From positions 1 to 53,629 of the forward strand of contig PDIP01000133.1 of assembly GCA_002811645.1 (NCBI GenBank): DNA of 53,629 nucleotides. Reading direction: 5' to 3'. This stretch comes from Corallochytrium limacisporum Hawaii. Lineage: Eukaryota; Protista; Pluriformea. The notes under the pieces are model-generated. The model was not told the origin of the DNA. It searched no databases and was given only the letters and a program-made list of their open reading frames with translations. Each line of letters opens with the position of its first letter. The stretch's first letter is position 1. Shown here piece after piece: positions 6,857 to 50,700 of the stretch. A program made the position numbers and the translations under genes.

Positions 6857-9724
6857 TCAGAAGGGGATGCGAGTATTCCAGTAGTACTCCAAGAAGCGTG
6901 GCATGTGGCTGCTCATAACCTTGCCAACCTGACCAATGCGTGACGAATGTACATCACGAAAGCCTGTGGCAAACACACTGAGGCAGTCTTCAACAGCCTT
7001 ATCCACTGTGAGGATTTCGACACCCGTCCATGGCCTACTGAAGCCTTCCACAGTATCAGAAACCATATCGGTTTCTACGAGTGGCAAGTATATGTCGGAT
7101 ACCATCACATTGTCAACGCTGGCCTCTGCAGACACTGAGGAAGACAGAGTGCCCAGAGCGCTCTTACTGGCTGCGTAACATCCGAACCATTTGGCGCCGG
7201 TGTTTACGACCTCGGAATTAACGTTGATAATAGCACCAAACCTCTGCGCCCGCATAATGGGTACAATCTTTAGCATGAGGCTGGCGGGACCAAGGTAGTT
7301 AACCGCTACCACTCGAGAGAAGTCGTGCACTCGTTTCTCTTGATCAGCGAATGGGCGAAAGATGCTACGGCCTGCATTGTTGAAGAGCACGTGAATCGTG
7401 CCAAACTGCTCCATCGTCTGTTTGATGAGAGAGTCACAGTCCTCCTCCACGGTCACATCGCAACGCATCAAAAGCACACGATCTCGTCGGCTGCCATTGA
7501 TCTGCAAAATCTCAGCCTTGAGAGTCTCCAGTTTCTCGACACTGCGTGCGCAGATAACAACCTTAGCTTTGGCACGTGCCAGAGCCAAAGCCAGCGCGCG
7601 GCCTATACCACAGCTCGCACCGGTAACGATACAGACGCGGTCACTGACGTACTGCGGGAGAGTGGCCAAGACATTACCATTAGGCACGGATGCAGACGCC
7701 CGGAAAGACGCCCACAGGGTTGGTGCCAACGAAGCCAGATCGACTGCGTTTACTTCCTGCGTGGCACCAATGGCATGGAGAATTCCTTTGGTGTGGGCGG
7801 ATCGAACCTGTACCTCGCTCACGGGACCAGCATACATAACGCCAGCATCGCGGGGAATGCCGAAAATGCCGTTCAACAATCCTCGAGGATCACCCAGCTT
7901 GATCATTTGGTGAATCGGTTCAAAATGAGCTGCTTGGTTAACGCCCATTCTCAGCTCTAGCGCCGCGCTGTCTTCGTCGCTTGGCATGAACTTTGGACCC
8001 AGGCCATTTGCGTCAGCGACCAAATTGAGAAACTGAGAAATTTTCATCTCACAAGATCCGCTGATGTGAAATATTTGAGTGTCCAGGTTGCTCGTGTGAC
8101 TGAGCAAGCTCATTTGCTCCACGGCATCCTCAACCATCATTGGATACATTTTGCCGTCAGCAAGCAACGGCAGCAGTCCGTTCGCGCCAAGCTGTTGTCG
8201 GTGATGATCCGCAAAGTGAAGAAGTCGCAAAGCGGACGTTGCCGGGTACAGTTGACCCTCTCGGTTGCAGAGGATCAGACCGAGACGATACACTCGATAC
8301 CGAAGATCACAGGATTTTCTCAATGCGAGCAACATTTGCTCGGCCAAACAAGACTTGGCGCCAAGCCCAAGGCTGTAGTGAGTCTCTCGCTCCTCGAGAT
8401 CCACATTGGTTTCTGTCAGCTTTTCGAAATGGTCGGTGGTCTCCAGTACACCTAACCCCTGCTGACCAACAGCAAGATGGAAAGTGCACTTCGCTTTGGC
8501 ACAGGCCTTGGCGAGCATAGCAAGCGCATCCAGATCGGTTCGCTCTGTCACGAAATAGTAGACTGCGCAGCCAACTTGAAACTTCTGCGTCATTTTTCTC
8601 CTCATTTTGTTGTTACCTTTGCTCGGTGTGCCGATGTCTGTGATGATGCTGGTCGCCTCACCATTTTCTGTCAGGGTCTGGGCCAGAGCCTTGCTAAGAA
8701 AATCATCGGCTCCATCGTCGAGCACGACGTAGTTCATGGGATACTGAATCATGCTCACATGGGAAGAAAATTCTTCGTCTATGAAATTTGCAGACGCGTG
8801 CTGTGCGCCGCCTGCTTGCTTGTCGAAGTGAGTCCGCTGCACAAACTTGATGTACTCAACCTTCGCAGTCTCTTCAGGCATGCCACGCATTTTGGCCCAA
8901 TAAGGCAGAATATGCTGGTCTATCATGTTCAGATCTTCGGCAGTCATATCATCCGGTACATCACCTTCTGTAGCCTGCTTGAACAGAGCAAAAGTATGCA
9001 TGAAATGGAAACGGCCGTTACGCATGGCATGATACGAGATGCCATGTTCGGCAACTACCTCAGCAACTGCTTCAAATCGTTCTTGCAAGTTAACATCGGT
9101 TTCTCTTGGTTCTGCCTGAATGGTGCCGTCCGCCAGTGTGACTCCAGACCATGGTTCTTGGAAATTTAGCTCCTCAGTTTGTGCCAGGGTAGCCTCGGGG
9201 TTGTCGGGATCGGCCGACACTTTCTTTTGTTTGATATCATTAGATGTCTTTGTGCCAGTTTCCCCTAACATCATTTTGATGTGGTCAATGTAGGCCCGTT
9301 TCGCGGCCGCTTTGCTCATGTCACCCAGCTCTATCCAAGCGTCTCTCATCTTGCGGTCTCGGCCCTTGAGTTTGCTCAAGTCAGCATCGCAAGGGGCTGG
9401 ACCTTCGGTGGCTTGCTTATAGAATGCATATGCTTTTAGCAATTTTGCCACTCCTCCCTTTTTGGCTGCGATCTTGGCGATCTTGGCGCCTGAGGTGGCG
9501 GCTTTTCCCTTCTTTACGTATTCATTAAACTCAGCCTCACTGGTTTCTCCAATTGAACCGGTGGAAGTGCTCCTCTGACCCGATGAAGAGGAGCTGCTCT
9601 TAGTGACACTCATTGCCGATCCGTCAAGACTGTTGCCTTCTGATGCACACTTTCTGACGGTTCGTTTTGGGCTTGCGTCCCCATTGGCCCCCCTAATCTT
9701 TAGCAGAGATCTTACTCTCCTCAT
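6857..9724 (-). CDS. Two acyl-CoA-binding (ACBP) domains fused to a two-domain fatty acyl-CoA reductase (degenerate extended SDR plus Acr1-like SDR)
   Basis: ACBP motifs LKAYAFYKQATEG...DAW...MSKAAAKRAYI and FALFKQATEGD...WAKMRGMPEETAKVEYI. C-terminal SDR has TGASCGIG, NNAGRSIFR...HDFSRVVAVNYLG (Acr1/Maqu_2507/Rv3391-type signature) and catalytic YAASK. Middle domain has YRVYRLGLI and IFHIS, typical of extended SDRs. Confidence 0.85.
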   Translation of the reverse strand: MRRVRSLLKIRGANGDASPKRTVRKCASEGNSLDGSAMSVTKSSSSSSGQRSTSTGSIGETSEAEFNEYVKKGKAATSGAKIAKIAAKKGGVAKLLKAYAFYKQATEGPAPCDADLSKLKGRDRKMRDAWIELGDMSKAAAKRAYIDHIKMMLGETGTKTSNDIKQKKVSADPDNPEATLAQTEELNFQEPWSGVTLADGTIQAEPRETDVNLQERFEAVAEVVAEHGISYHAMRNGRFHFMHTFALFKQATEGDVPDDMTAEDLNMIDQHILPYWAKMRGMPEETAKVEYIKFVQRTHFDKQAGGAQHASANFIDEEFSSHVSMIQYPMNYVVLDDGADDFLSKALAQTLTENGEATSIITDIGTPSKGNNKMRRKMTQKFQVGCAVYYFVTERTDLDALAMLAKACAKAKCTFHLAVGQQGLGVLETTDHFEKLTETNVDLEERETHYSLGLGAKSCLAEQMLLALRKSCDLRYRVYRLGLILCNREGQLYPATSALRLLHFADHHRQQLGANGLLPLLADGKMYPMMVEDAVEQMSLLSHTSNLDTQIFHISGSCEMKISQFLNLVADANGLGPKFMPSDEDSAALELRMGVNQAAHFEPIHQMIKLGDPRGLLNGIFGIPRDAGVMYAGPVSEVQVRSAHTKGILHAIGATQEVNAVDLASLAPTLWASFRASASVPNGNVLATLPQYVSDRVCIVTGASCGIGRALALALARAKAKVVICARSVEKLETLKAEILQINGSRRDRVLLMRCDVTVEEDCDSLIKQTMEQFGTIHVLFNNAGRSIFRPFADQEKRVHDFSRVVAVNYLGPASLMLKIVPIMRAQRFGAIINVNSEVVNTGAKWFGCYAASKSALGTLSSSVSAEASVDNVMVSDIYLPLVETDMVSDTVEGFSRPWTGVEILTVDKAVEDCLSVFATGFRDVHSSRIGQVGKVMSSHMPRFLEYYWNTRIPF

Positions 9725-37252: not shown

Positions 37253-38956
37253 AGCTAAACTATGTGATACTTTGATTAGCTACTTGTTATCGCGGTCACT
37301 CACGCGCAACGCAGCGCCAGATGAGAACCCCCAGAGTACTGTTCTTGAATAGCTTTGGGTCTGCCGGCGTAGGGTGTCTCCACCGGATCGGTTTCGTACT
37401 ACTACTCTCTGAGTATGGCGTTTCGTGTCAGAGGTGGGCAATTGAGGTTTACCTGATTTGTGGTGGTGGGGGGGGGGGGGGGGGAGTGGGTGTTTGCGGT
37501 GGGGCGAAACAAAGACGGACAGACTTAGGGATCGTACAGCTTTAGTTCGCGGTGTTCTTGCGCAGGCTGTGTCTCCGCACAAGTGATGTGTGTTAGGTAG
37601 AGTTGGGCACAAAAAATTACCACTTGCGCTCCATGGAAGAAACAAAGGTGGGTGGGTCACAGGAGGAAAAATTCAGGGGAACGCAACACCACAACCAGAG
37701 GACATATTGTTTCTGTATCTTGCTTTGTGATACCACAGACACGTAAACATTCAGGTAGGGTACATTCAGTATTGTTTGTACGGAACGAGGGTCTTCTTCC
37801 CACCGCCGTCAGTATGTTCCGTCCGAATGTGCCCAGTTTTCGTTACTCTGCTTTTGCGAGCACGGGACACCAAATGAACGGTCAGGTAGGAGACGGAGAG
37901 GAGGGGGGGGGGCCTGGGGAAGGGGAGAGAGAGGACGAGGCCCCCGTTTCAGGGAAAATCCCTGGGGAAGCGGACAAGCGAGCGGACCGGACCAGGGACA
38001 TGGACTTCAGTTTAGCCCGCAATTGTCCACCCCAGAGAATCCCAACGCGAGAATATAATTGTGACAGTGGTGCTATATGAGATGCAATAAAAACGCAATG
38101 CATATTATTGTAACACTATTGAACTAGTTTGTATGTTGGCGGTCAGTTTTGAGTCCGCTCCAATGACACTTTATTGTTGATTAGTAGCCTCCACCTGCGG
38201 TTTTCATGGACTCCGGACATAAACGTGTAAGTGTTTATTCATGATGTTAAATATAAGTTAACTATTACAATGGAGCAAGTATACATTAACCGTTCTGGCA
38301 AGATAATGCGAAGGTTTTGGATGCTTTATCTCTCTTGGTTACATATTCTCAAATGGTGTTCCTGCCATGTCAATGGGTAGAAATGATTGAATTTGAATTC
38401 ACAGCCGCCCAAAGGATTGAATTCTATTTTAATTATAATAGCATATAGTACACGCAATCAAATTTGAACACACCCGATCTTCTTGTCAATGGTTGTGGGG
38501 AACGATTCTCCATTCATCTTGCATTCCATGCGCTAACTCGAAGACATTACGTAGAAGAAAATGACAATCTGTCAACAGATACTCTTGAGCGTCATATGAG
38601 GAATTTCAACACTGTATTGGATGTGCGCGTAAATACTCAAAAGAGTATTATATACACAATTATTTCCTCTCTAAATAGCTCTCGAAAGTTAAGTATATAT
38701 TCCCATCTTTTGTGGGATGTAGGAGAAGACCCTATGGGTATTAACAACCCATCAAATTTTCAGCTTAATTCAACGAAAACACAAGAATCTGCCACACAGG
38801 TTCGAAGATCGATACAGGCTTGTCGTCGGCAACCCGCCAGGAACAGCAACCAGCGGAGGACAGAGTTCACACACTTCCAAAGGGTAGGAGGTATTGATCC
38901 GTAATGCTGAGTGAGGAAGATTTAGGAGCCACAAAGCTGATAACATTAAAGTGAGG

Positions 38957-41449
38957 ATGGCCCCCCGCCCCGGGGGGGGGGGTCGCCCCAGAGTTGCGGC
39001 GCTTACGTATTCAAAACATTCCGGGTCTGCCTGGCAGATGGGGGGTACCTTCGTACCAGTACGGATGGGCTTGGATGCAGCACCACCGGACACAGTAACG
39101 ATGAGAGATGGCGACGGTCAAACATGGTGCGGATGTCCATTACTGTACACAATCGGCATCGATGTCGGGACATCAGCTGTGAAGATAGTCCTCGTCGCGG
39201 CACGATCTATGGAGATCAAACCTTTAACCATCGACCAGAGACCAGTGGATAATCATTCCAAGACAATCAGGGTTCAGGCAGCAGCAGGGTCATGCCATTG
39301 TGAATGTCATATCAAGGTGGGCGCAGGCCTATGTGGCGTTGGCGACATCGTCGCATACCAGAGCTATGCAGTTGCCCCGCCGACGAGCACTCGAAAGGGA
39401 GAATCAGTGCAAGATCCAAAGTCTTGGACTCTGGGGTGGACTGACGTGAACGGGATCTTTCGCTATGATAGATGGATCTATGCGGAAAGAACGGAGCGGT
39501 GGAATAAGCACTGTGATGAACTTGCTGATTTTTATTCAAGACACGGACTGCTCCGATCCGAGAGTCGCGTTGGCCAACCATATGACTTGCTAAAGGATAG
39601 ACTTAGTGCCGTCAAATTCAACAGCGACGACTGTGTGATTGACTTACAACCCACCCATATGTGCGATTGGTGTCCGCAACGAGTGGTCTACGGCCTTGCA
39701 GGTGTCAGTCTCTCAGGACAGATGCATTCTGCGGTGCTGCTTCGTCCTGATGAAAGTCACCATCAAACAGATTCGAAACTACCAATCCGTTGGAAAGCTG
39801 ATCCGTACTGTATGCTGTGGAATGACAGTCAAGCACATCATCACGCCGCGGCCATGAACGAGACACCGGAACTACTTAGGGCTCTGGCCAACCTCATCAT
39901 GCCCGGTTTTACTGCGCCTAAGTTGCGATATTTGTGCGAGGACTTGAACAAGCGTGAGTTTACGACGTGCGTCATGCCCAAGGATTGGGTGCGTTGTCGA
40001 CTTCTCGAAGCGCAGGGGTTTCTTGCGGAGCCATCTGAAGGGGCAACCAGGTCGTTATATAGTCCAATCAAAGGCTGGGACCCCGTTACGGACTACAGCG
40101 ACGCAAGCGGGACTATGCATTTACGGCTAGCTGGGACTGGCGCACATAGTCCAGAAAGGGGTGGTAGGGGCAACTGGCTGCATCAGTTCAGGCAAGATTG
40201 CTTCCGTCTTCCGGACTGTTTCTCCTGGCCGGCGCTATCCGAATCGACAGAACCAGACACGGGCAATTGCGTCCTTGCGGTCGTTGATAACGACAATGAC
40301 AGTCCTGGTTACTGCATTCGCGTGTACATGGGCGCAGCCGACAATGCTGCGGCCGCTGTGGGTATGGGTGTCGTTGCCAACGCTCTACAGCGTCGTCAAT
40401 CAAAAGGACGCAATCAGGAGAACGACATGGGAGATAGAGGGACATCTCGTTGGCTGATGTCCCTAGGCACGTCAGGGACGACAGTTATACCGCCGGCTTG
40501 CGAGAGTGTGTACCCAGACGCAGCCGAGGCCGGTGTGCACACCTTCTACGGCGCTCTCCCTTATGAACATTACTTTATGGCCGTGCACCTCTCGGCCGCG
40601 AGTGCCATGAGCTGGTGGACATCCATCTGTCGTGGTCCGACATCAGCATCGACTGAAAATTTACACGTCACAGAATCGTCGTTAATTGCGGAACTGTTCA
40701 CAGACACTGGCATGGCGGACAGTATAAGTTCGAGAGAGGAGAACGCAAATGCCTATGACGATGCACTTCACTGCGTCGCCTACGGGCCCACGGACGCTAA
40801 CAGGAATGGTTATGAATTATTCTTTATTCCATACCTGAGCGGTGAGCGCACACCTTTCGACATCACTGCTGGCCACGGAACCTTCCTCGGGCTCTCGCCT
40901 ACAACCACTCGAATGGACATGACCCGTGCGGTTCTTCAAGGTGTGGCATTTGCCTTCCGGCTGGGAGTAACAGCGGTTACTGATTCGGTGGGTGGGAAAT
41001 GCAGCTGTCCACGCACGGCGTCCAAACATGTAGCAGATGAAGACAACACCGAAGTACTGCTAGTCGGAGGCGGTGCGCGATCTTGGATCTGGCGCGCAAT
41101 ATTTGCGGCGGTGATGCAGAAGCCCATGGTTGCACCGGTTGGGCACAACACCGCGGCCGCGGTTGGTGCCGCACGCTTGGCAGTACTGGGCGTGAAACGC
41201 GAACGCAGACGTCTACTGCGCTCTGGTACAGACAGCCATGCCACGGCTGACCAACTTTGTCCCTACGGCCCAGAGGAAGCTATCGACATCGCGCAAGACT
41301 GCTGGACACCGAAACAAACGGAGGCCCCAACAATGGTAGTGCCCGAACGGTACGCGGCGGATTGGAATGCAAAGTATAACCGCTGGTGCAAGACCGTGCA
41401 TGTCATGCACCAGGCTGGACTATTTCGTCATACTAATGGGGAGGAGTAG
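38957..41449 (+). CDS. xylB: FGGY-family carbohydrate kinase, bacterial XylB-type xylulokinase with large insertions (start uncertain: ATG at 38957, 39038, 39065 or 39101)
   Basis: IGIDVGTSAVK, SGQMH, LWND, NLIMPGFTAPKL, MPKDWVR, DYSDASGT, DNAAAAVGMG, SLGTSGT, PYLSGERTP, GGGARS and GAARLA. Confidence 0.88.
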   Translation: MAPRPGGGGRPRVAALTYSKHSGSAWQMGGTFVPVRMGLDAAPPDTVTMRDGDGQTWCGCPLLYTIGIDVGTSAVKIVLVAARSMEIKPLTIDQRPVDNHSKTIRVQAAAGSCHCECHIKVGAGLCGVGDIVAYQSYAVAPPTSTRKGESVQDPKSWTLGWTDVNGIFRYDRWIYAERTERWNKHCDELADFYSRHGLLRSESRVGQPYDLLKDRLSAVKFNSDDCVIDLQPTHMCDWCPQRVVYGLAGVSLSGQMHSAVLLRPDESHHQTDSKLPIRWKADPYCMLWNDSQAHHHAAAMNETPELLRALANLIMPGFTAPKLRYLCEDLNKREFTTCVMPKDWVRCRLLEAQGFLAEPSEGATRSLYSPIKGWDPVTDYSDASGTMHLRLAGTGAHSPERGGRGNWLHQFRQDCFRLPDCFSWPALSESTEPDTGNCVLAVVDNDNDSPGYCIRVYMGAADNAAAAVGMGVVANALQRRQSKGRNQENDMGDRGTSRWLMSLGTSGTTVIPPACESVYPDAAEAGVHTFYGALPYEHYFMAVHLSAASAMSWWTSICRGPTSASTENLHVTESSLIAELFTDTGMADSISSREENANAYDDALHCVAYGPTDANRNGYELFFIPYLSGERTPFDITAGHGTFLGLSPTTTRMDMTRAVLQGVAFAFRLGVTAVTDSVGGKCSCPRTASKHVADEDNTEVLLVGGGARSWIWRAIFAAVMQKPMVAPVGHNTAAAVGAARLAVLGVKRERRRLLRSGTDSHATADQLCPYGPEEAIDIAQDCWTPKQTEAPTMVVPERYAADWNAKYNRWCKTVHVMHQAGLFRHTNGEE

Positions 41450-41679: not shown

Positions 41680-44600
41680 TCATCCACGACGTCGCAAACT
41701 GCGCAAGTGGTTAGTCATTTGAATGATTCGGGTGAGCAATTCCGTTAAGGTGATAGTCTTATCCGAGTATTGGAACACGCCCGGATAGCCCCCGAGCAGG
41801 AGTGTTAAATTGCCCAGAAGACGGCTGATCCGTCCATTGCCATCCTCGAAGGGATGAATGTAGTGGACGAGAGCGCTGTAGACATAGAATGCCATCACGG
41901 GGGCTGGCCAGGAGCCGTCTGCTGTCTTGCGGGCCACCACGCGCCCGACGTAGTCGACCATTGCCGGCACCTCTTCGTATGGAGCAAACACGCGGTAAAA
42001 GTGAAGGAACATGTAACTGCCAACGACCCAATTCGTCCGGAAGGCCCCTTTGGTCTTGTCTTCCTGCAGATTCATGGCACGGTGTAGGCTCAAGAGACGG
42101 TCGACACTGACCAACAGCGCTGCCGCGGCTGTGCCTGACGGCGCACTGCGTGTGGGAGTTTTAGGGCCCATTGTGGTATCTGTCTCGTTGCTGCCACTGC
42201 TGCCGTTCTCTTCACTGTCCTCCTGTGTGGCCTGTTGAATGTCCTGGATGATAGCATTGAGCTGTTCCATACAGCCCAAGCATTCTGCTTCCTCGGCATT
42301 GACGCCACCCGAGTTTATTTGCGTCGCTTGACGACTGCCCAACGTCTTGTAGACAAGTGACGTCGTAAATTGCGCTTTGCTGGCGTTCTCCGGATCCGCA
42401 CAAGAAAGGACCTCATCACGACGCTTAAAGTCCTGCCATTCTTTCCAGATGGTTGTTTCCATCTGTCGCAAATGACGCCAGATTGGTGATTCGGGCATAC
42501 CAGGGCCGTAGAATGGGCCGAGATTCTCATCCCTTTCGGCCAGCTCTCGTTCCGATGGTACAATCGCGTTGGGATCGCCGGCACTGTTTAGGTAGAGAAG
42601 ATCCTTGCTGCCGCTTCCCAAGTTTTCAAATTCAGCGTCGTCCATCATCATGTCGTTAGCGTTGTCGACGCCATCAGCCCCTACCAGGTTAATACTCGCA
42701 GAGCTTCCCTTGCCCGAGTCTCGGTGTACGGACGTTTTTGCCAAGGCCTCCACAAGCAGTTCCCGCGGGTATTGGTGTCGCGCATCGCGTCGGGTCTTAA
42801 GTCGAGGCCAAAGGCCGTATTCCTTTAAACGCCAGACCATCCGTGTAGCCTGCTCGCGGACCGGAGTGCGAGACGTCTGCTGCGGGCTCACAGTGAGCAT
42901 GAATCGCAGCGCAGCAGCAATCGAGTCCACGACCATAGGCCACTCCTCCATATCACGCAAGCTCGGCGCGGCCTCCACAAGAGGTTCAAGCACAGCCATA
43001 CCGGCTTTGTGCTCATCACTGTTCATAGCTTCGAGCCAGAAGTTAACCAGACAGAGCGCCTGCGTGTCTAGCAGAATTTTTAGGCCGCATCCCAGCCCGA
43101 GGCGCAGAACGCCCGGTCCAGCGCCCGGGAAGTGGACGTCCGGATGCCTCGGCGGCGCGTTGTGGTAGTATTCACCCGGGGTCGTGCTTCGCAGTGGATT
43201 CAGGTCGTACCGATCCTGTTTTCCACCGGCACCTGCCATCGAGTGGCGAGACCTGCTGTCTATACCACCTTGGTTGCAGACCGAGATTTTGGCAAACACT
43301 CCCTTGACTACTTCAGCAAATTCGTGACGAGACACGTCCTCCGTTGGGAGACGAACGCAGGCACTCATCATGTGCGCAACCAGGTGCGCGACTTCCATGA
43401 AGTACGCGATCATCTCGTGGAATTCCTTTCGCTCGTCCTTAGCGAAAAAGACAAAGACGCCCAATTCTTCCTCTTCCTGGTCAATCATTATGGGCATAGC
43501 AAAGCTGGATTTCAGCTCTGCGGCCCGGGCCATTGGCGCACGCAAAAAGTTAGCTTGATGCATTTTGAGTGCGTCCTCGCGCCAAACGTGGCGTCGTCCG
43601 TTAATGGGGACGCCACCGAAAAACACATTCGGGTCAATAGCCAAGCGCTCGGACACTTCCCGGAAGAGCACTACCTGCGGATCCTCCGAATACTGGCGGT
43701 CGAGGTAGCTTACATGGCGGCAGCACTCGAGTGTGACGAGCTTTGGATTCACGGTCCACATTTCACCGTACGTCCACACGCCCAAGCGTCCCAGGAAAAG
43801 GAGCAGCGCAGTCATGGCCTTGTGTACAATGTCCCGGTGTTTGCCAAACCGACGGCAGCACTTACCCGGCACCATCGTGCCAAGGTTCACGTCTGGGTCA
43901 TCAAGCGTTAGTCCACGCTTGACCACAATCTTAACGCTCATGTTGATAAAATCGGCGAGCGATTGGTGGCCATTGCGGAGCGCATCGCTGAACGGCGTGT
44001 TCCCCCAACGATCCATGCAGTCGCTCTGAGCCCCCTTTTCAAGAAGGTACTTGACTACTTCAAAATGTCCCTCCGCGCTAGCTAAATGCAACGCGGTCCG
44101 CTTGTCATAGTCGGATGCATTGACATCTGCGTGCTTGTCCTCGACAAGGAACCGCACGTAGTCCAAGTCACCCCGGTGCGCAGCCAAGCATAGGTCACTG
44201 GACGCCGGATACTCAGCTGCATTGCTCGGGGTGGCGCCGTGGGTGAGCAAGATGTTCTCAATTTCGTGACGATTGTACTGCAATGCGGTCCGCACCGGTG
44301 TGGTACCGTATCGATCAGTAGCATTCACGTCCGCGCCTTTGGCAATCAAATATTCAACCACATCCACGTGACCTGCTGCAACGGCCAGATGGAGCGCGGT
44401 GCGGCCATCGAAGTCGCGGCACGCGTGCCCGTTAACATCCATTTTCCCATTTTCCACCAACTTGCGCAGCTCACGAAGCTGTCCCAGACTGGCTAACGCG
44501 CAAATCTTGGCGCCCAGACCATGCGCACGTTCACCATCTGTTACGGCGCCCTGGCTCTTCAGAAACTCAGCCACCTTAAGGTGACCGTTCGCGACCGCGT

Positions 44601-47600
44601 CCTCCAGAGGGGTACCACCCCAGCGATCTGTAGCGTTGACATTCGCACCGGCCGCGACTAGAAACTCAACAACTCGCATTCGACCCTCGGCAGCCGCCAA
44701 ATGAAGCGGTGTGCGTCTATCGTAGTCGGCCACGGCGCTCAGGTTCGCGACCTGAAAGCTCAGGCGCTGTAGCAGGACAAGATCACCTTCAGCTGCAGCA
44801 TTGCACAGAGCCATAGCAATGTTTTGTTCAAAAGTGATTTGCCCACTTAGGTCAGCCGTCGCCCGGTCGCCTCCACTCTTGCCAGCCCCAGTGGCGGTTG
44901 GGGCTGTGGTAAACTCCACACTCTGACGCATGGCCGGCGTCGCGTAGCCAGAGAAGGAGATTGGGGTTGAGCTTGGATTGCTGTCCAGGCCAAACCCTCC
45001 GCCACCTGGACCCGGAACCCCAATGGTTGCCATGCCTCCAGCCACGAACCCGCTCGCGCTCGTGGCGCTCGTATCGCGAGACAGTCCCGGGCTGGTGCCT
45101 GCTGTGGTATTGCCAGGGGCTTCCAAGCTAGTGTCACGGTGCATTGACACGCTCACCGGATCATCCACCATACCCGCATCGGTCAGCAGATCGCTGACGC
45201 CGTCTTTGAACTTAACCGAGCCGCGTCGTTTCATCTCCAGTCCACCGGTGTCGTCATCCTCCTCCATGTCATCATCGACTACCATGGTGCTGGAGCCGCC
45301 TTGGTGCTGTTGCTTGTTACCAACCGAGTCAAGCATGACATCTGTTCGTGAGGGGCCCGGGCTGTTCGACATGTTCCGCTTCCCGGCTCCTGCGTTCCCG
45401 CCCCTCGCGTCCTCTTCGCTGCTCTCCGTGAACGGTGCATCTGATCCAGCACCCATGGAGAAAGCCACCTGACTGCCAGCGGGCCCTGGCGATGTCAGCG
45501 GTGGCGGGGCGTGACTGTACTGACTCAAAAAGTCCCGCATTCTTCCAGTGGATGCGACGCGAATGATCTTGCCCAGGCCCTGGTCGTAGTATTCCCCCGG
45601 CCGGGTTGAGTGGTGTTGAGGGTGGTGAGTGTGCGGCGCTTGACGTCCGCTAGAAGCACCCGGTCCACCGCGCTCTGTTATGCTGCCACTACCGTATGTT
45701 TCCATTCGTACGGAACTGCGTGGTGATTCCGGACGGCTCGACGTCCGGCTCGGGGGCGTGCGTTGGCCGCTATGATGCTCCGCAGCGCCTGTGCTCGATG
45801 TTGAAGCATAGCGTGCCCGTCTTTCCTGGCTTGCGGTTGCCACTGATGAACGCGGAGAGTATCGGTTAGATCCAGTTCCTGATGATGATGCCTGTGGTGA
45901 CGGTCCCACCGTCTGCACCATGGGGACAGTGCTAGCCCCCATTTCTCGCAGGGATGGCAACGACGGCTGTTTGGACAGCCCCGCACCAGAGTGCTGTCTC
46001 TGCCCAGCACCTCCGCTGCTCCCACCTGCAGCACCATGAGATGGGCCCGTCTGCTCCCCAAACATTTCTTTGAACGACTTCGGACGATAGTCCTCCAAGA
46101 CGGGCTTCTCATCCACAGCAGATTTTGTCGCCTTCGGTCTGGCACCCAGGTCCATGTACTCGTCGTCTTCGAATTTAATGTTTGCGCTCGTCTGCCTCGG
46201 CATGCGACCACGCAGCTGTGACGGATCGCTGCCACCGTCCACGCCTGTCGCTGATCCGGGTGTGGTACGTTGATCTCTGCCACTATCCTTCGAACTCGAC
46301 CCTGCAGTCGCCGCAGAGACAGCCGCAGCGGTCGACGTTGACGGGCCCGACGGTGGCATGTCCCGCGGAGTCACATGTCCACCTGACGACGCCACTGCAG
46401 ACCCACCACCGCCAATTGACATCTCACTTACCATCTGCTGTACGCCAATGCTACCGAGCGAAGTTAGGCTCGTCCGAGGCGAATTGCCAGCCGGAGAAAT
46501 ACCGGGTGAAAGGCAAGAATTGGCAGAGCGTTGACGATACCCATAGTCTGGCACAGACAAGACACCAGAGCCATCTGCTGTTACCGTATCCTGTGTCGAG
46601 GCTGTCTGGGCAGGCTGCTGCTGTGATTGCTCCTGTTGTGATTGTTGCTGCTGCGATTGCTGTTGCTGCTGCCCAGGCTGTTGTTGCTCCTGAACAGTTG
46701 GCGCGGAAAAAGCGTACGGCTCCATAGTCGCAGCACTGCCACAGTAGCCACCAATCATCGCCGGGCGGTACGCCCGGGTTGATCCAGACATCATTCCGTA
46801 CGAGCTCGTGTAGCCCGATCCAGCTACGGCTTGCTTTTTTTGTGCGTGGTAGTACGCACCTGACGATCCCATCATGGGACGGTAGTAGCGCTGATTCGGC
46901 GGCACGTAGCGCGGCCCTCCACTGGGAGGAAAGCCCGGATTATTGCCACCGCTAACGCTTCCACCGCTGGTACTGCTGCCCGTCCGAGGAGCGTACGAAT
47001 ACTCCGCAAAAGACGGAACGTGGCTTTGTTGCACGCTTGCTGGCGCCGGGGCTCCCGATGATGACACATTCGATGCCTGTCCTATCGAAGTCTGCGATAA
47101 GACACGCTGCATATCATTGTCCTCTCTACCAGTTGTGCCTCCGAAGGGATTAGTGTTGCTGGGCTGTGATTGGGATGATGTTTGCGGCCGCGGTGACTGT
47201 TCCGCAGTTTTTGCCGCAGTGGTGTGTTGCTGCTGCTGCTGCTGCTGTTGATAGCGTGCTTCACCAACCGCCGAGCTACCAGTGCTAGAAGCCAAAGCAC
47301 TGTCCCGTTCACTCCAAGTATTAACGGCCTGGCCTCCTGTCGCTGGGGCCTTCGCACCACCCTCGAGCGTGGCCCGCGACAACTGTTCTGTAGTGGCATG
47401 TAGCGAAGGACTGTCCAATTTGCCGGGGTCCTTGGAAGACACACTACTACTTGCCCCATAGTCTGACTCCCGTGCTGAGTTTGGATGCTGGAACTGGTCA
47501 CCTGAACGCAAGTTGGACTGCATAATCTGTTCCCACGAGACCTCCTGCTTTGCCCCTTGCTGCTGCGGAGAAGGCACTTGCGCGACCAATCGCTCTTCCA

Positions 47601-47727
47601 ATTCCGCGTCCTCGATGTGCGAGTTGCTGCGCTTGCGACTGGCAGAACCGACGCTGTCCCGGCGCTTTTTATAGTCCTCCTCAGAGTAGTTTCCTCCTGG
47701 AGCCATGCCGCCCAAGTGCGTACTCAT
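41680..47727 (-). CDS. 2015-aa multidomain protein: ~970-aa disordered S/G/Q-rich region, ankyrin repeats, GAF-like domain, C-terminal Fic domain
   Basis: Ankyrin triplets DYDRRTPLHLAAAEG / DFDGRTALHLAVAAG / DYDKRTALHLASAEG and DRWG.TP. GAF-like WTYGEMW...FLRAPMARAAELKSSFAMPI...GVFVFF. Canonical Fic motif HPFEDGNGRISR at 41821-41856. Confidence 0.92.
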   Translation of the reverse strand: MSTHLGGMAPGGNYSEEDYKKRRDSVGSASRKRSNSHIEDAELEERLVAQVPSPQQQGAKQEVSWEQIMQSNLRSGDQFQHPNSARESDYGASSSVSSKDPGKLDSPSLHATTEQLSRATLEGGAKAPATGGQAVNTWSERDSALASSTGSSAVGEARYQQQQQQQQHTTAAKTAEQSPRPQTSSQSQPSNTNPFGGTTGREDNDMQRVLSQTSIGQASNVSSSGAPAPASVQQSHVPSFAEYSYAPRTGSSTSGGSVSGGNNPGFPPSGGPRYVPPNQRYYRPMMGSSGAYYHAQKKQAVAGSGYTSSYGMMSGSTRAYRPAMIGGYCGSAATMEPYAFSAPTVQEQQQPGQQQQQSQQQQSQQEQSQQQPAQTASTQDTVTADGSGVLSVPDYGYRQRSANSCLSPGISPAGNSPRTSLTSLGSIGVQQMVSEMSIGGGGSAVASSGGHVTPRDMPPSGPSTSTAAAVSAATAGSSSKDSGRDQRTTPGSATGVDGGSDPSQLRGRMPRQTSANIKFEDDEYMDLGARPKATKSAVDEKPVLEDYRPKSFKEMFGEQTGPSHGAAGGSSGGAGQRQHSGAGLSKQPSLPSLREMGASTVPMVQTVGPSPQASSSGTGSNRYSPRSSVATASQERRARYASTSSTGAAEHHSGQRTPPSRTSSRPESPRSSVRMETYGSGSITERGGPGASSGRQAPHTHHPQHHSTRPGEYYDQGLGKIIRVASTGRMRDFLSQYSHAPPPLTSPGPAGSQVAFSMGAGSDAPFTESSEEDARGGNAGAGKRNMSNSPGPSRTDVMLDSVGNKQQHQGGSSTMVVDDDMEEDDDTGGLEMKRRGSVKFKDGVSDLLTDAGMVDDPVSVSMHRDTSLEAPGNTTAGTSPGLSRDTSATSASGFVAGGMATIGVPGPGGGGFGLDSNPSSTPISFSGYATPAMRQSVEFTTAPTATGAGKSGGDRATADLSGQITFEQNIAMALCNAAAEGDLVLLQRLSFQVANLSAVADYDRRTPLHLAAAEGRMRVVEFLVAAGANVNATDRWGGTPLEDAVANGHLKVAEFLKSQGAVTDGERAHGLGAKICALASLGQLRELRKLVENGKMDVNGHACRDFDGRTALHLAVAAGHVDVVEYLIAKGADVNATDRYGTTPVRTALQYNRHEIENILLTHGATPSNAAEYPASSDLCLAAHRGDLDYVRFLVEDKHADVNASDYDKRTALHLASAEGHFEVVKYLLEKGAQSDCMDRWGNTPFSDALRNGHQSLADFINMSVKIVVKRGLTLDDPDVNLGTMVPGKCCRRFGKHRDIVHKAMTALLLFLGRLGVWTYGEMWTVNPKLVTLECCRHVSYLDRQYSEDPQVVLFREVSERLAIDPNVFFGGVPINGRRHVWREDALKMHQANFLRAPMARAAELKSSFAMPIMIDQEEEELGVFVFFAKDERKEFHEMIAYFMEVAHLVAHMMSACVRLPTEDVSRHEFAEVVKGVFAKISVCNQGGIDSRSRHSMAGAGGKQDRYDLNPLRSTTPGEYYHNAPPRHPDVHFPGAGPGVLRLGLGCGLKILLDTQALCLVNFWLEAMNSDEHKAGMAVLEPLVEAAPSLRDMEEWPMVVDSIAAALRFMLTVSPQQTSRTPVREQATRMVWRLKEYGLWPRLKTRRDARHQYPRELLVEALAKTSVHRDSGKGSSASINLVGADGVDNANDMMMDDAEFENLGSGSKDLLYLNSAGDPNAIVPSERELAERDENLGPFYGPGMPESPIWRHLRQMETTIWKEWQDFKRRDEVLSCADPENASKAQFTTSLVYKTLGSRQATQINSGGVNAEEAECLGCMEQLNAIIQDIQQATQEDSEENGSSGSNETDTTMGPKTPTRSAPSGTAAAALLVSVDRLLSLHRAMNLQEDKTKGAFRTNWVVGSYMFLHFYRVFAPYEEVPAMVDYVGRVVARKTADGSWPAPVMAFYVYSALVHYIHPFEDGNGRISRLLGNLTLLLGGYPGVFQYSDKTITLTELLTRIIQMTNHLRSLRRRG

Positions 47728-50700
47728 TTCTACGGCTATGGAAAGTAGTAGCGGTTCAAATTCTCAACAACAATTTACATTCTTCAGTGATCTACAGGTC
47801 TACGATAGACCCACTATGTTGTTCTTATATTTAAGTCATTTTCGTACGATGTATACTCCGAACAAGGATGAAGTAATACACACTTCCCGATCGGACTCCC
47901 GAGACAAAACTAAGTCGTTTAGTTAAAATTCTCTGGTCGTCCCGGAGCAAGGAATGCAGTGACAAACCTTTACTCTTCTCACTACAGATGCATATGATCC
48001 TCATATAGCACCCCATGGCCAACACCGTCGTCCTGTCCTTTAGCATTTTGAAAAAACCGCAGGCCCAGCCAAGTCTGTCCATCCACTCCTGTCCGCTCAC
48101 TTACCAAATGGTCTCAGTCTGCAACAAGCACCGGTGACGTAGGGGGGACCCCTGCTAATACTGCACTCAGGGCATCGAGAACCCCAACCACCTCCACCCA
48201 TTCCACACACACACACACACCAAACCGGGAGAGCAAATCAAGCAGAGGTAGGACCGGGAAGCTCCGGTATTTTAGACAAAACCGGCGGGTACCCCCCTTC
48301 CCCGCGGGGCGGGTAGTTAGAACACTGGCTCCTGTTTCTCTCTTTTCCTTCCGTTCGGGTTGGCCACCACTCTGGCCCCCCCCCCCAACGCTCGCGATGA
48401 CTCTCGCTCTCCCGCTCACACACACACACACTCTCTCGTCTTCCGAGTTTTGGTGGCCCTTTGGCTCGCGCTCGTAAGAACTGCACTGGTCCGCCTGCAG
48501 TGGGAAAACACTCGGAGTTTCGGCGACTTCAGTGGGGCGGTCGGCCCGGAAGGGAGGAAAAGAGAGAGAGAAGGAAGAGGGGGTTTGGAAGAAGGGGGGG
48601 GGAGGGGAGGGGAGGGAAAGTTTGGAGGGGAGAGAGCGCGGGGGCTAGCAAGAGCCCGGAGGGCGCCACACCGGTACCACATCATTAAAGAAAGGCGAAG
48701 AGAGACTTCAGCCAGTCGCGCGGGCAGAAGGAAATGGGAAACAAATGCCTCCGGGCCCAGTGTTTAGCCCCGGGGAATGGGGGTGGTGGCAAGTAGCCCG
48801 ATTATACGTTCCGAGGAGGAAGCCAGCCAACAGAGAAAGGCGAGAAAGCCACCGACGAAGGCCCTGCAGACACACACACTCTCCCTTCCGTCTCGCCCAA
48901 AAATGGCGAAGGTGCGACACCTGCAAACGAAATCCAGAACTGTGGAAGGAGCGACCTCACCAGCGAGCGAAGGGACCAAGGTAGGGCCAGCGAAAAAAAG
49001 GTAACGCTATTCTGTTGCATTTATTGAAACTCGCCGTTGGACACGTCCCAAGCCCCCGACGGTGCGGCGAAAAAATGGTGGGAGGCATCTCAAGGGAGCT
49101 GTCCAGCAATGGCCGACGTTTCGGACATAGAGACACACGGACATCTTGTACATGCAACGTACTGCCTCCGCTGACTCCAGTACGTTCAGTCAGTTCCTCC
49201 ACGATCATCCTAAAGAGGGGAAGACAGACTTCTCCTCGTGAAGTTGCCCTGGTGTAAGCAACGATGCCGAATAGTAGACAGAGACCATAGAATCACAATG
49301 ACTTCACTGCCCCACTTACAGAGAGCACACAACGCAGCAACCTAGTATGGTGGTGAAGGCCTCGATAGGCAGAAAGTGTCCGCAGATTATCATACCGGAG
49401 TTGTGACCAAAGCACAGTGCACAATTTTGTTTTACATCCCGCACACTACGGTCAACTAAAACACCGCAAAACACAGTGTCGGCAGTTGGCCGTACTGTCC
49501 ACATCACCGCTACCTGGTTTCATTCTGTAATTCAAAGCGATTCATTAGGTGCTCCCTGCTGTCCCCCTAGGGGATAGTTCGTACATTCAACCAGGGGCTC
49601 TATACCACACACCCTATCCCTGGGCTTGCAAAAAAAAAAACCTTACATTATCTAGCCCTCCCCGCACCGCTTGCGGGTGTGATTAGGCCGGGGAGAGGAT
49701 TTCAGACGGGCAAGGCAAAATCATCAACAAAGTTCTCTCCTTCTGCCCTTTTTCCCCAAATTGTATAGTTTTTTCTAACTTTTTCCTGTTCCTCCTTTCT
49801 CTCTTCAGGTTTTCCCATTTTTGTTTTTTTCTCTTGGGGTTTCTTATCAGTCTTCCCTCCGGTTCTTGTTCTCTGTTACGCCAGTCTCTTGGACCCCTTT
49901 TCTTTCTTGCCAACTCACTCCTCCTTGCTTCCTTTTATTTCTTGCCTGGTCCAGGCAAGGCCTTGGACGAAGGGGGGGGGTTGTAGACGCCGGGATGTTT
50001 GGATTCCGGCATCTCCGGGGTACTGTACTTGGTGCGCCCTGTGGCGGCGGCCTAGAGGAGAGGATCAAACAGTCACCGAGGAGAAAGTGTATTCAGGGCG
50101 CGCTATCATCCACTGTGCTTCTCTTGAGCGAGTTTTTTTTTCGACGACTTGGAATCTTGCGAACACCCTTGGTTGTGCGACAAACCCAAGGGGAAGTGCT
50201 GAGCAAGGCACAGTACAGAAAGCGGGCAGTCGCGGTACCCCGGTTTCGCGCATAAACTCAAAGTGTCCCGTGGCTCGGGGGAAGATAGTGGATTCAAATG
50301 ATTAAATAGTGAATCAGATGATAAGAAAAGGATTTGCGACTGAAGACAAATCAAAACATACAAATTACAAATCACGATAACTTTTTTGTAGTTTTTTAAA
50401 TCTAAAGCACAGTATTCTGAATCACAAAGGAAAGCAAGTGGTGGCCAAAAACTGCTGGCTCATGGGGGAAGAGAGAGGCCCAGCAGCGCCTTCTCCTCGC
50501 TCCCTCCTCCCCCTCCTCTCCCAATTCCTTCTCATGTTCTCTGCTCACCTTTCTTCTTTCGTCGCTCTCGCGCTCCTGCGCTCTACACAACCCCCGTTTG
50601 AATTTTCGTCGGGGGTTGTGGCCACCTCAGCCAGCTGTAAAATAGACCCCCGCCCAAGGAGGTTTGGCTGACCTGATTCACTCGGGAGTCTGTTTAACTT

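Follow-up and report, generated by a model that had tools for sequence, protein, structure and literature searches.

The window analysed here is a stretch of 53,629 nucleotides of DNA from Corallochytrium limacisporum Hawaii (contig PDIP01000133.1). Its minus strand carries a single-exon gene (41680..47727) whose open reading frame (ORF) of 2015 codons is uninterrupted and intron-free, with zero internal stops. From the N- to the C-terminus, the encoded protein of 2015 amino acids (aa) consists of a disordered arm, nine ankyrin repeats, a GAF domain, a helical module and a Fic domain, and a search of the 24.1 Mb genome for Fic matches found this one alone. All features of this gene are given below as window coordinates of the minus strand. 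A preliminary description of the sequence had placed the arm, the ankyrins, the GAF-like block and the Fic domain in the correct order but had missed the conserved helical module at aa 1466-1640 between GAF and Fic. It had also treated the fusion as unique, which it is not: a full HMMER scan shows that the protein belongs to a widespread eukaryotic family. We regard this family-level finding as solid and put forward the sensing role of the GAF domain as a hypothesis.

The Fic domain and its missing inhibitory motif

The Fic domain with its N-terminal helices comprises aa 1738-2012 (41692..42516), as determined by Pfam, profile alignment and fold. PF02661 matches aa 1874-1976 with 35.8 bits against a cut-off of 24 bits. 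An AlphaFold model of aa 1280-2012, with a pLDDT of 81 and a pTM of 0.80 despite about 185 low-confidence residues, matches the Fic folds of FICD (a tied best match; Z 15.3, rmsd 3.4, 197 residues) and of BtFic and IbpA (both Z 14.8). The catalytic motif HPFEDGNGRISR, with His1958 (aa 1958-1969, 41821..41856), is intact, as the preliminary description had stated. It fits HxFx(D/E)GN(G/K)RxxR, the motif of AMPylating Fic enzymes (PMC8097203), and has the GNG and the two arginines of canonical AMPylators (PMC2686095, PMC8097203). Across the family alignment, its H, D, G, N, G and second R do not vary (37-38 of 37-38 rows). Judged by this motif, the protein would be an AMPylase.

Two further features set the family apart from the prokaryotic Fic proteins sampled. 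An extended flap with the pattern VGSxxFxxFYRxFxPxEE (41971..42024) has its V, G, Y, F, P and E invariant in 38 of 38 family rows and was present in 0 of 80 sampled prokaryotic Fic relatives. The flap of Fic enzymes positions the target (PMC8097203), and its invariance here may be the sign of a conserved target. After the catalytic motif, the protein carries DK (41758..41763). The family has [DH]K at this position in 35 of 36 rows, with the lysine invariant; DK occurred in none of the 80 prokaryotic proteins, 66 of which have a YY-type motif there.

In FICD and the class II enzymes, an inhibitory (S/T)xxxE(G/N) motif lies N-terminal to the Fic core. The corresponding site in this protein (42358..42405) is shortened, variable and motif-less: the profile alignment contains a deletion and a variable loop with no conserved residue, and the AlphaFold model has short helices only. 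The strict motif N-terminal to the Fic core was found in 0 of 35 family members versus 70 of the 77 nearest prokaryotic Fics, while a looser version of the pattern gave four scattered matches. Nor is there a C-terminal (S/T)xxxE(G/N) of the class III kind; E1996 is present in 23 of 36 rows, but it lacks both an S/T at the fourth position ahead of it and a G/N behind it. The inhibitory glutamate represses AMPylation and is required for de-AMPylation (PMC8097203; 10.1101/323253). Because its motif has been lost, the family is predicted to be write-only and to need another brake.

The GAF domain, the helical module and the N-terminal half

The GAF domain comprises aa 1296-1462 (43342..43842). A direct Pfam scan of this protein gave no GAF hit; the assignment comes from profile comparison, the score of a profile on the genome and the predicted fold. 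Comparison by hhalign with a set of 52 domains, 51 of which hit GAF_2, gave a probability of 99.9 and an E-value of 5e-32, and scanning the genome with a profile of related GAF domains gave an E-value of 3e-24 at 43402-43824. A GAF profile made from family members alone matched only GAF-fold structures (EGL3, PDE2A, PtsP, PDE6C and Cph2). The relatives P0005 and P0007 pass the Pfam cut-offs for GAF_NLP and GAF_2, and members of the family match PF22922 and PF14215. Language-model features also pointed to GAF clusters (0.94), the ten best hits all falling in one family or clan. Across the domain the pLDDT of the AlphaFold model exceeds 89. The best fold match is EGL3 (Z 15.3, rmsd 2.1, 138 residues) and many further GAF structures match at Z 11-14; the alignment used for folding consisted partly of bacterial GAF domains, which leaves the fold in some measure dependent on the profile evidence. 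Folding of the block as a single sequence gave a pLDDT of 34 and was not used. By profile and by model, the middle block is thus a real GAF domain, akin to the sensor GAFs of bacteria and to those of the NLP / bHLH-MYC_N type, much as had been proposed from its residue pattern.

The nearest sequence relatives of this domain are found in bacterial sensor kinases and cyclases, and many of the residues conserved in the bacterial domains are kept in it (W1318, W1324, F1355, R1356, W1382, D1385, R1396 and P1412). The closest folds, the bHLH-MYC_N (EGL3, MYC3) and NLP GAF-like domains, are parts of plant transcription factors, whereas the domain described here is fused to an enzyme and has an extra Cys/His cap. 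The RWP-RK and PB1 domains of NLP transcription factors gave zero Pfam hits in this protein. The cap, CCxRFG (43843..43860), lies directly ahead of the GAF domain and is specific to the family, although oomycete members are without it. Most non-oomycete members retain the Cys-Cys/His/Cys set, and the cap together with H1302 and C1336 possibly forms a Cys/His metal or redox site.

Between GAF and Fic lies the helical module (aa 1466-1640, 42808..43332), delimited from the model and the profile alignment and containing a disordered insert. It has two invariant motifs, W..xMxS[ED]xH (43009-43038) and TVSP (42883-42894). Among the family rows, S1570 and an acid at 1571 are each conserved in 21 of 21, H1573 in 22 of 22, and the SP at 1614-1615 in 22 of 23 (S) and 23 of 23 (P). 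Searches of Pfam, PDB sequences and the Atlas gave no convincing match for the module, which may have a fold of known type such as HEAT/ARM; all other parts of the protein are known domains. Since shorter members of the family have the module and Fic yet neither GAF nor ankyrins, these two parts are the conserved core of the family. The confidence of the AlphaFold model over aa 1280-2012 points to a defined mutual arrangement of GAF, helical module and Fic.

The N-terminal half is made up of the arm and the repeats. The arm (aa 1-964, 44836..47727) is of low complexity (16% S, 13% G, 9% A, 8% Q and 8% P), as the preliminary description had implied, and a Pfam scan of it gave zero matches. It is lineage-specific, and in some relatives Kelch or LRR domains occupy its place. 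The repeats had been estimated at about nine; there are nine, at aa 968-1268 (43924..44826, Pfam Ank_2 E 2e-43), arranged as three triplets whose similarity suggests that they arose by triplication of a three-repeat unit. A hydropathy scan found neither a hydrophobic N-terminus nor a transmembrane segment, the maximum 19-residue value in the first 60 aa being -0.49, and the protein is predicted to be cytosolic, in agreement with the earlier proposal. A role as a secreted effector was considered and rejected, the N-termini of this protein and of the Plasmodiophora and oomycete members not being signal-like.

Distribution of the family and integrity of the gene

A full HMMER scan with the post-ankyrin part retrieved 191 proteins, the best of them matching in several collinear stretches. 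Word-based homologue searches returned the protein itself or nothing and were uninformative, as the HMMER scan retrieved the family. The ankyrin-GAF-Fic arrangement occurs in Plasmodiophora brassicae, Aphanomyces stellatus, Pythium oligandrum and several environmental (compact-genome eukaryote) proteins, Kelch-ankyrin-GAF-Fic in Diphylleia rotans and Rigifila ramosa (CRuMs), and Kelch-GAF-Fic in Rhodelphis marinus; Syssomonas multiformis has a partial member. The domain order is shared by at least nine other eukaryotic proteins, and the clade spans no fewer than five major lineages (holozoans, CRuMs, Rhizaria, oomycetes and Rhodelphis). The informative neighbours of the environmental members are eukaryotic genes, for example ATG7, chitin synthase, Vps23 and PSME4. 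No family member was among the matches listed for viral contigs, plasmids and a sample of prokaryotic genomes.

In a tree from which FICD was left out, 30 family Fic domains fall on one side of a 100/99 branch, with 77 prokaryotic domains on the other. Within the family, the two CRuMs proteins group together, as do the oomycete ones, and the protein described here groups with those of Rhodelphis, Syssomonas and Plasmodiophora (100/99). Because this subclade mixes supergroups, ancient paralogy followed by losses is possible, and so is transfer from one eukaryote to another.

Members are labelled in databases as hypothetical or ‘Fido domain-containing’. The same architecture was found in no characterised protein, as the preliminary description had supposed. 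A literature search, with most subscription journals outside its reach, found no description of the family, and the parts seen of two surveys of Fic evolution mention neither GAF fusions nor these taxa. The ankyrin-GAF-Fic family is apparently undescribed.

Some individual members deserve mention. Three short ones, P0010, P0012 and P0033 (L170-L174), begin with a moderately hydrophobic segment followed by basic residues and are possibly membrane-anchored; in P0010 and P0012 the module and Fic follow. The predicted protein P0109 joins anoctamin, EF-hand and ankyrin domains with an oomycete-type family Fic in one chain, which may be a fusion made by gene prediction. In the member at L168:8001-10692, an intron probably splits off the Fic end, which is annotated immediately downstream as a small gene of its own.

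Two public sequencing runs, the RNA nature of which is a guess of the tool used, were aligned to the Corallochytrium gene. Both cover 41745-47735 without joints, and one does so in a single contig that spans nearly the whole ORF. In one of the runs there is a 68-base hole within GAF. Because the spanning contig continues into the convergent neighbour gene, it alone does not prove a single transcript. The contigs of both runs start at about 47945-47946, which looks like the transcript start and gives a probable 5′ untranslated region at 47728..47946. This leader contains two minimal upstream ORFs, both out of frame, at 47837-47839 (Met-Thr-stop) and 47778-47780 (Met-stop). The second run or isolate differs at 18 positions in total: eight synonymous and one non-synonymous in the folded part, four synonymous and five non-synonymous in the disordered arm. 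These numbers, though small, are consistent with selection on the folded part.

By Pfam scan, the neighbours of the gene in the window are eukaryotic. The convergent neighbour, 230 bases away at 38951-41449 on the plus strand, encodes an FGGY-family sugar kinase with long insertions, and the contigs of both runs read through into it, which suggests overlapping 3′ ends. Elsewhere in the window, an ORF of 955 aa (6857-9724, minus strand) joins acyl-CoA-binding domains to a short-chain dehydrogenase.

Relation to known Fic enzymes, mechanism and meaning

We compared the protein with known systems. FICD/HYPE, which has the same catalytic motif, is the solved structure that the family Fic profile matches best (71 bits, E 7e-19); none of the 80 prokaryotic Fics sampled scored above 59 bits. 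The higher profile score hints at kinship between the family and FICD, a protein that lies outside the tree. Unlike FICD, this protein has no transmembrane anchor, TPR or inhibitory Glu234 motif; it has instead a longer flap, DK after the motif, ankyrins, GAF and the new helical module, and it is predicted to be cytosolic. No TPR was found by a search of the whole protein and of the helical module; on the FICD side, the fold match begins at residue 187. The class II bacterial enzymes (SoFic, BtFic and CbFic2) share a collinear Fic fold with N-terminal helices, but the inhibitory-motif region is deleted here and the family flap and DK are foreign to the prokaryotic sample. AnkX, the Legionella phosphocholine transferase, also has ankyrins and Fic in one chain. 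Its Fic domain is N-terminal to the ankyrins (PMC2686095), the reverse of the order found here, and AnkX is a secreted bacterial effector without GAF but with a CMP-binding domain (PMC4454073). Khater and Mohanty also describe the eukaryotic Fic groups E1-E4, of probable bacterial origin (basidiomycete; Dictyostelium/plant/fungal; metazoan; fungal Doc-like) (PMC4454073). None of the taxa or domains reported here is named in these groups, and the family is set apart from E1-E4 by these published descriptions, not by sequences. Overall, the protein appears to resemble FICD or a class II Fic minus the brake, and by its sequence it is neither FICD nor class II, class III or AnkX-like.

We tentatively favour, at less than even odds, the reading that the protein is a cytosolic, write-only AMPylase whose GAF domain gates it in response to a small ligand, a metal or redox input, and that its family is an old one with patchy retention among eukaryotes. 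In this mechanism, His1958 would transfer AMP from ATP to a Ser, Thr or Tyr of a conserved eukaryotic protein docked on the invariant flap and the helical module. The module would also hold the off state, which we assign to it because the usual inhibitory glutamate brake is gone. Ligand binding or a metal or redox change in the GAF domain would then release or tighten the module through the C-terminal helix of GAF, while the ankyrins and the disordered arm, or Kelch or LRR in relatives, would place the enzyme or add partners. The ankyrins, proposed earlier to recruit the target, are probably not the main target selector; they and GAF are dispensable in some members, and we infer that flap and module contribute more to the choice. 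That AMP is transferred to a conserved cytosolic protein seems quite probable whichever reading is adopted. It is somewhat unlikely, if conceivable, that the whole amounts to an ancient, possibly pre-supergroup, cytosolic one-component system, a ligand- or redox-gated AMPylase in which GAF and the helical module replace the inhibitory glutamate helix and act on a conserved eukaryotic target.

The relatives of the GAF domain in bacterial sensors, the conserved residues that it shares with them and the Cys-Cys/His/Cys set speak for gating by a sensed signal; several other observations weigh against it. P0010 and P0012 have neither GAF nor ankyrins beside the module and Fic; the enzyme can thus do without GAF. 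Residues that are near-invariant in bacterial GAFs vary freely across the family, the GAF branches are long, and the closest fold is the peptide-binding domain of EGL3/MYC3. For these reasons small-molecule sensing is offered as a hypothesis. The same facts, with EGL3 and MYC3 topping both profile and fold matches, favour a reading in which the GAF domain of the same AMPylase docks a protein or is structural, much as the N-terminal domain of plant MYC/EGL3 factors binds JAZ/MYB, and a partner protein rather than a small molecule switches or aims the enzyme. We consider this rather unlikely, as classic ligand-binding GAFs match the model nearly equally well (Z 13-13.6; NreA 12.9), the sequence relatives are bacterial sensors and the GAF of this protein is among the least drifted. 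The chemistry might also be different or run in both directions. As DK replaces the YY-type motif, the pocket for the nucleotide may not be the same, and GMP, UMP, phosphocholine or phosphate could be transferred; the acid of S-[ED]-x-H could be the regulatory glutamate moved to a new position, where it would restore autoinhibition and de-AMPylation. The pattern [SA]-M-x-S-[ED]-[DE] is spaced like (S/T)xxxE, its acid is present in every row, and structural alignments with SoFic start at this segment, which hints at closeness to the Fic core, although the matched range is given by its end points only. This protein has Asp rather than Glu at the site, however, and its catalytic motif is of the canonical AMPylator form, which makes the explanation improbable.

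A toxin-type enzyme similar to class I would be active by default and restrained by a separate inhibitor protein, with a part in defence or cell death and the repeats acting as infection sensors. The absence of an inhibitory helix in cis, the interchangeable ankyrin, Kelch and LRR modules, and the patchy distribution with a subclade of mixed supergroups would suit such an enzyme. It is nevertheless very improbable in view of the single match in this genome, purifying selection, housekeeping neighbours, an architecture conserved in a way that an arms-race family is not, and the zero matches in viral contigs or plasmids. Finally, the 68-base hole in one run might suggest an artefact, either contaminating bacterial DNA or a fusion of separate genes that arose in assembly or prediction. 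This explanation is largely refuted, and we give it almost no weight: the ORF is uninterrupted, the other run spans the gene in one contig, the same domain order recurs in other eukaryotes, and the neighbours are eukaryotic.

The significance of the GAF-gated AMPylase that we favour lies in what is known of eukaryotic AMPylation, which a review attributes to the metazoan endoplasmic reticulum enzyme FICD and to non-Fic enzymes (PMC8097203). The direct signals that control Fic enzymes were an open question (10.1101/323253). In Corallochytrium, stable transfection has been established (10.1101/2020.11.12.379420), and since the gene is also apparently single-copy, it is directly testable in its host. 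From the clade, an AMPylation target in the cytosol and an off-switch of a new kind are to be expected. We know of no Fic enzyme that is controlled through a dedicated sensor domain. If the reading is true, this protein would be one, and the family would add another eukaryotic AMPylase lineage to FICD and SelO.

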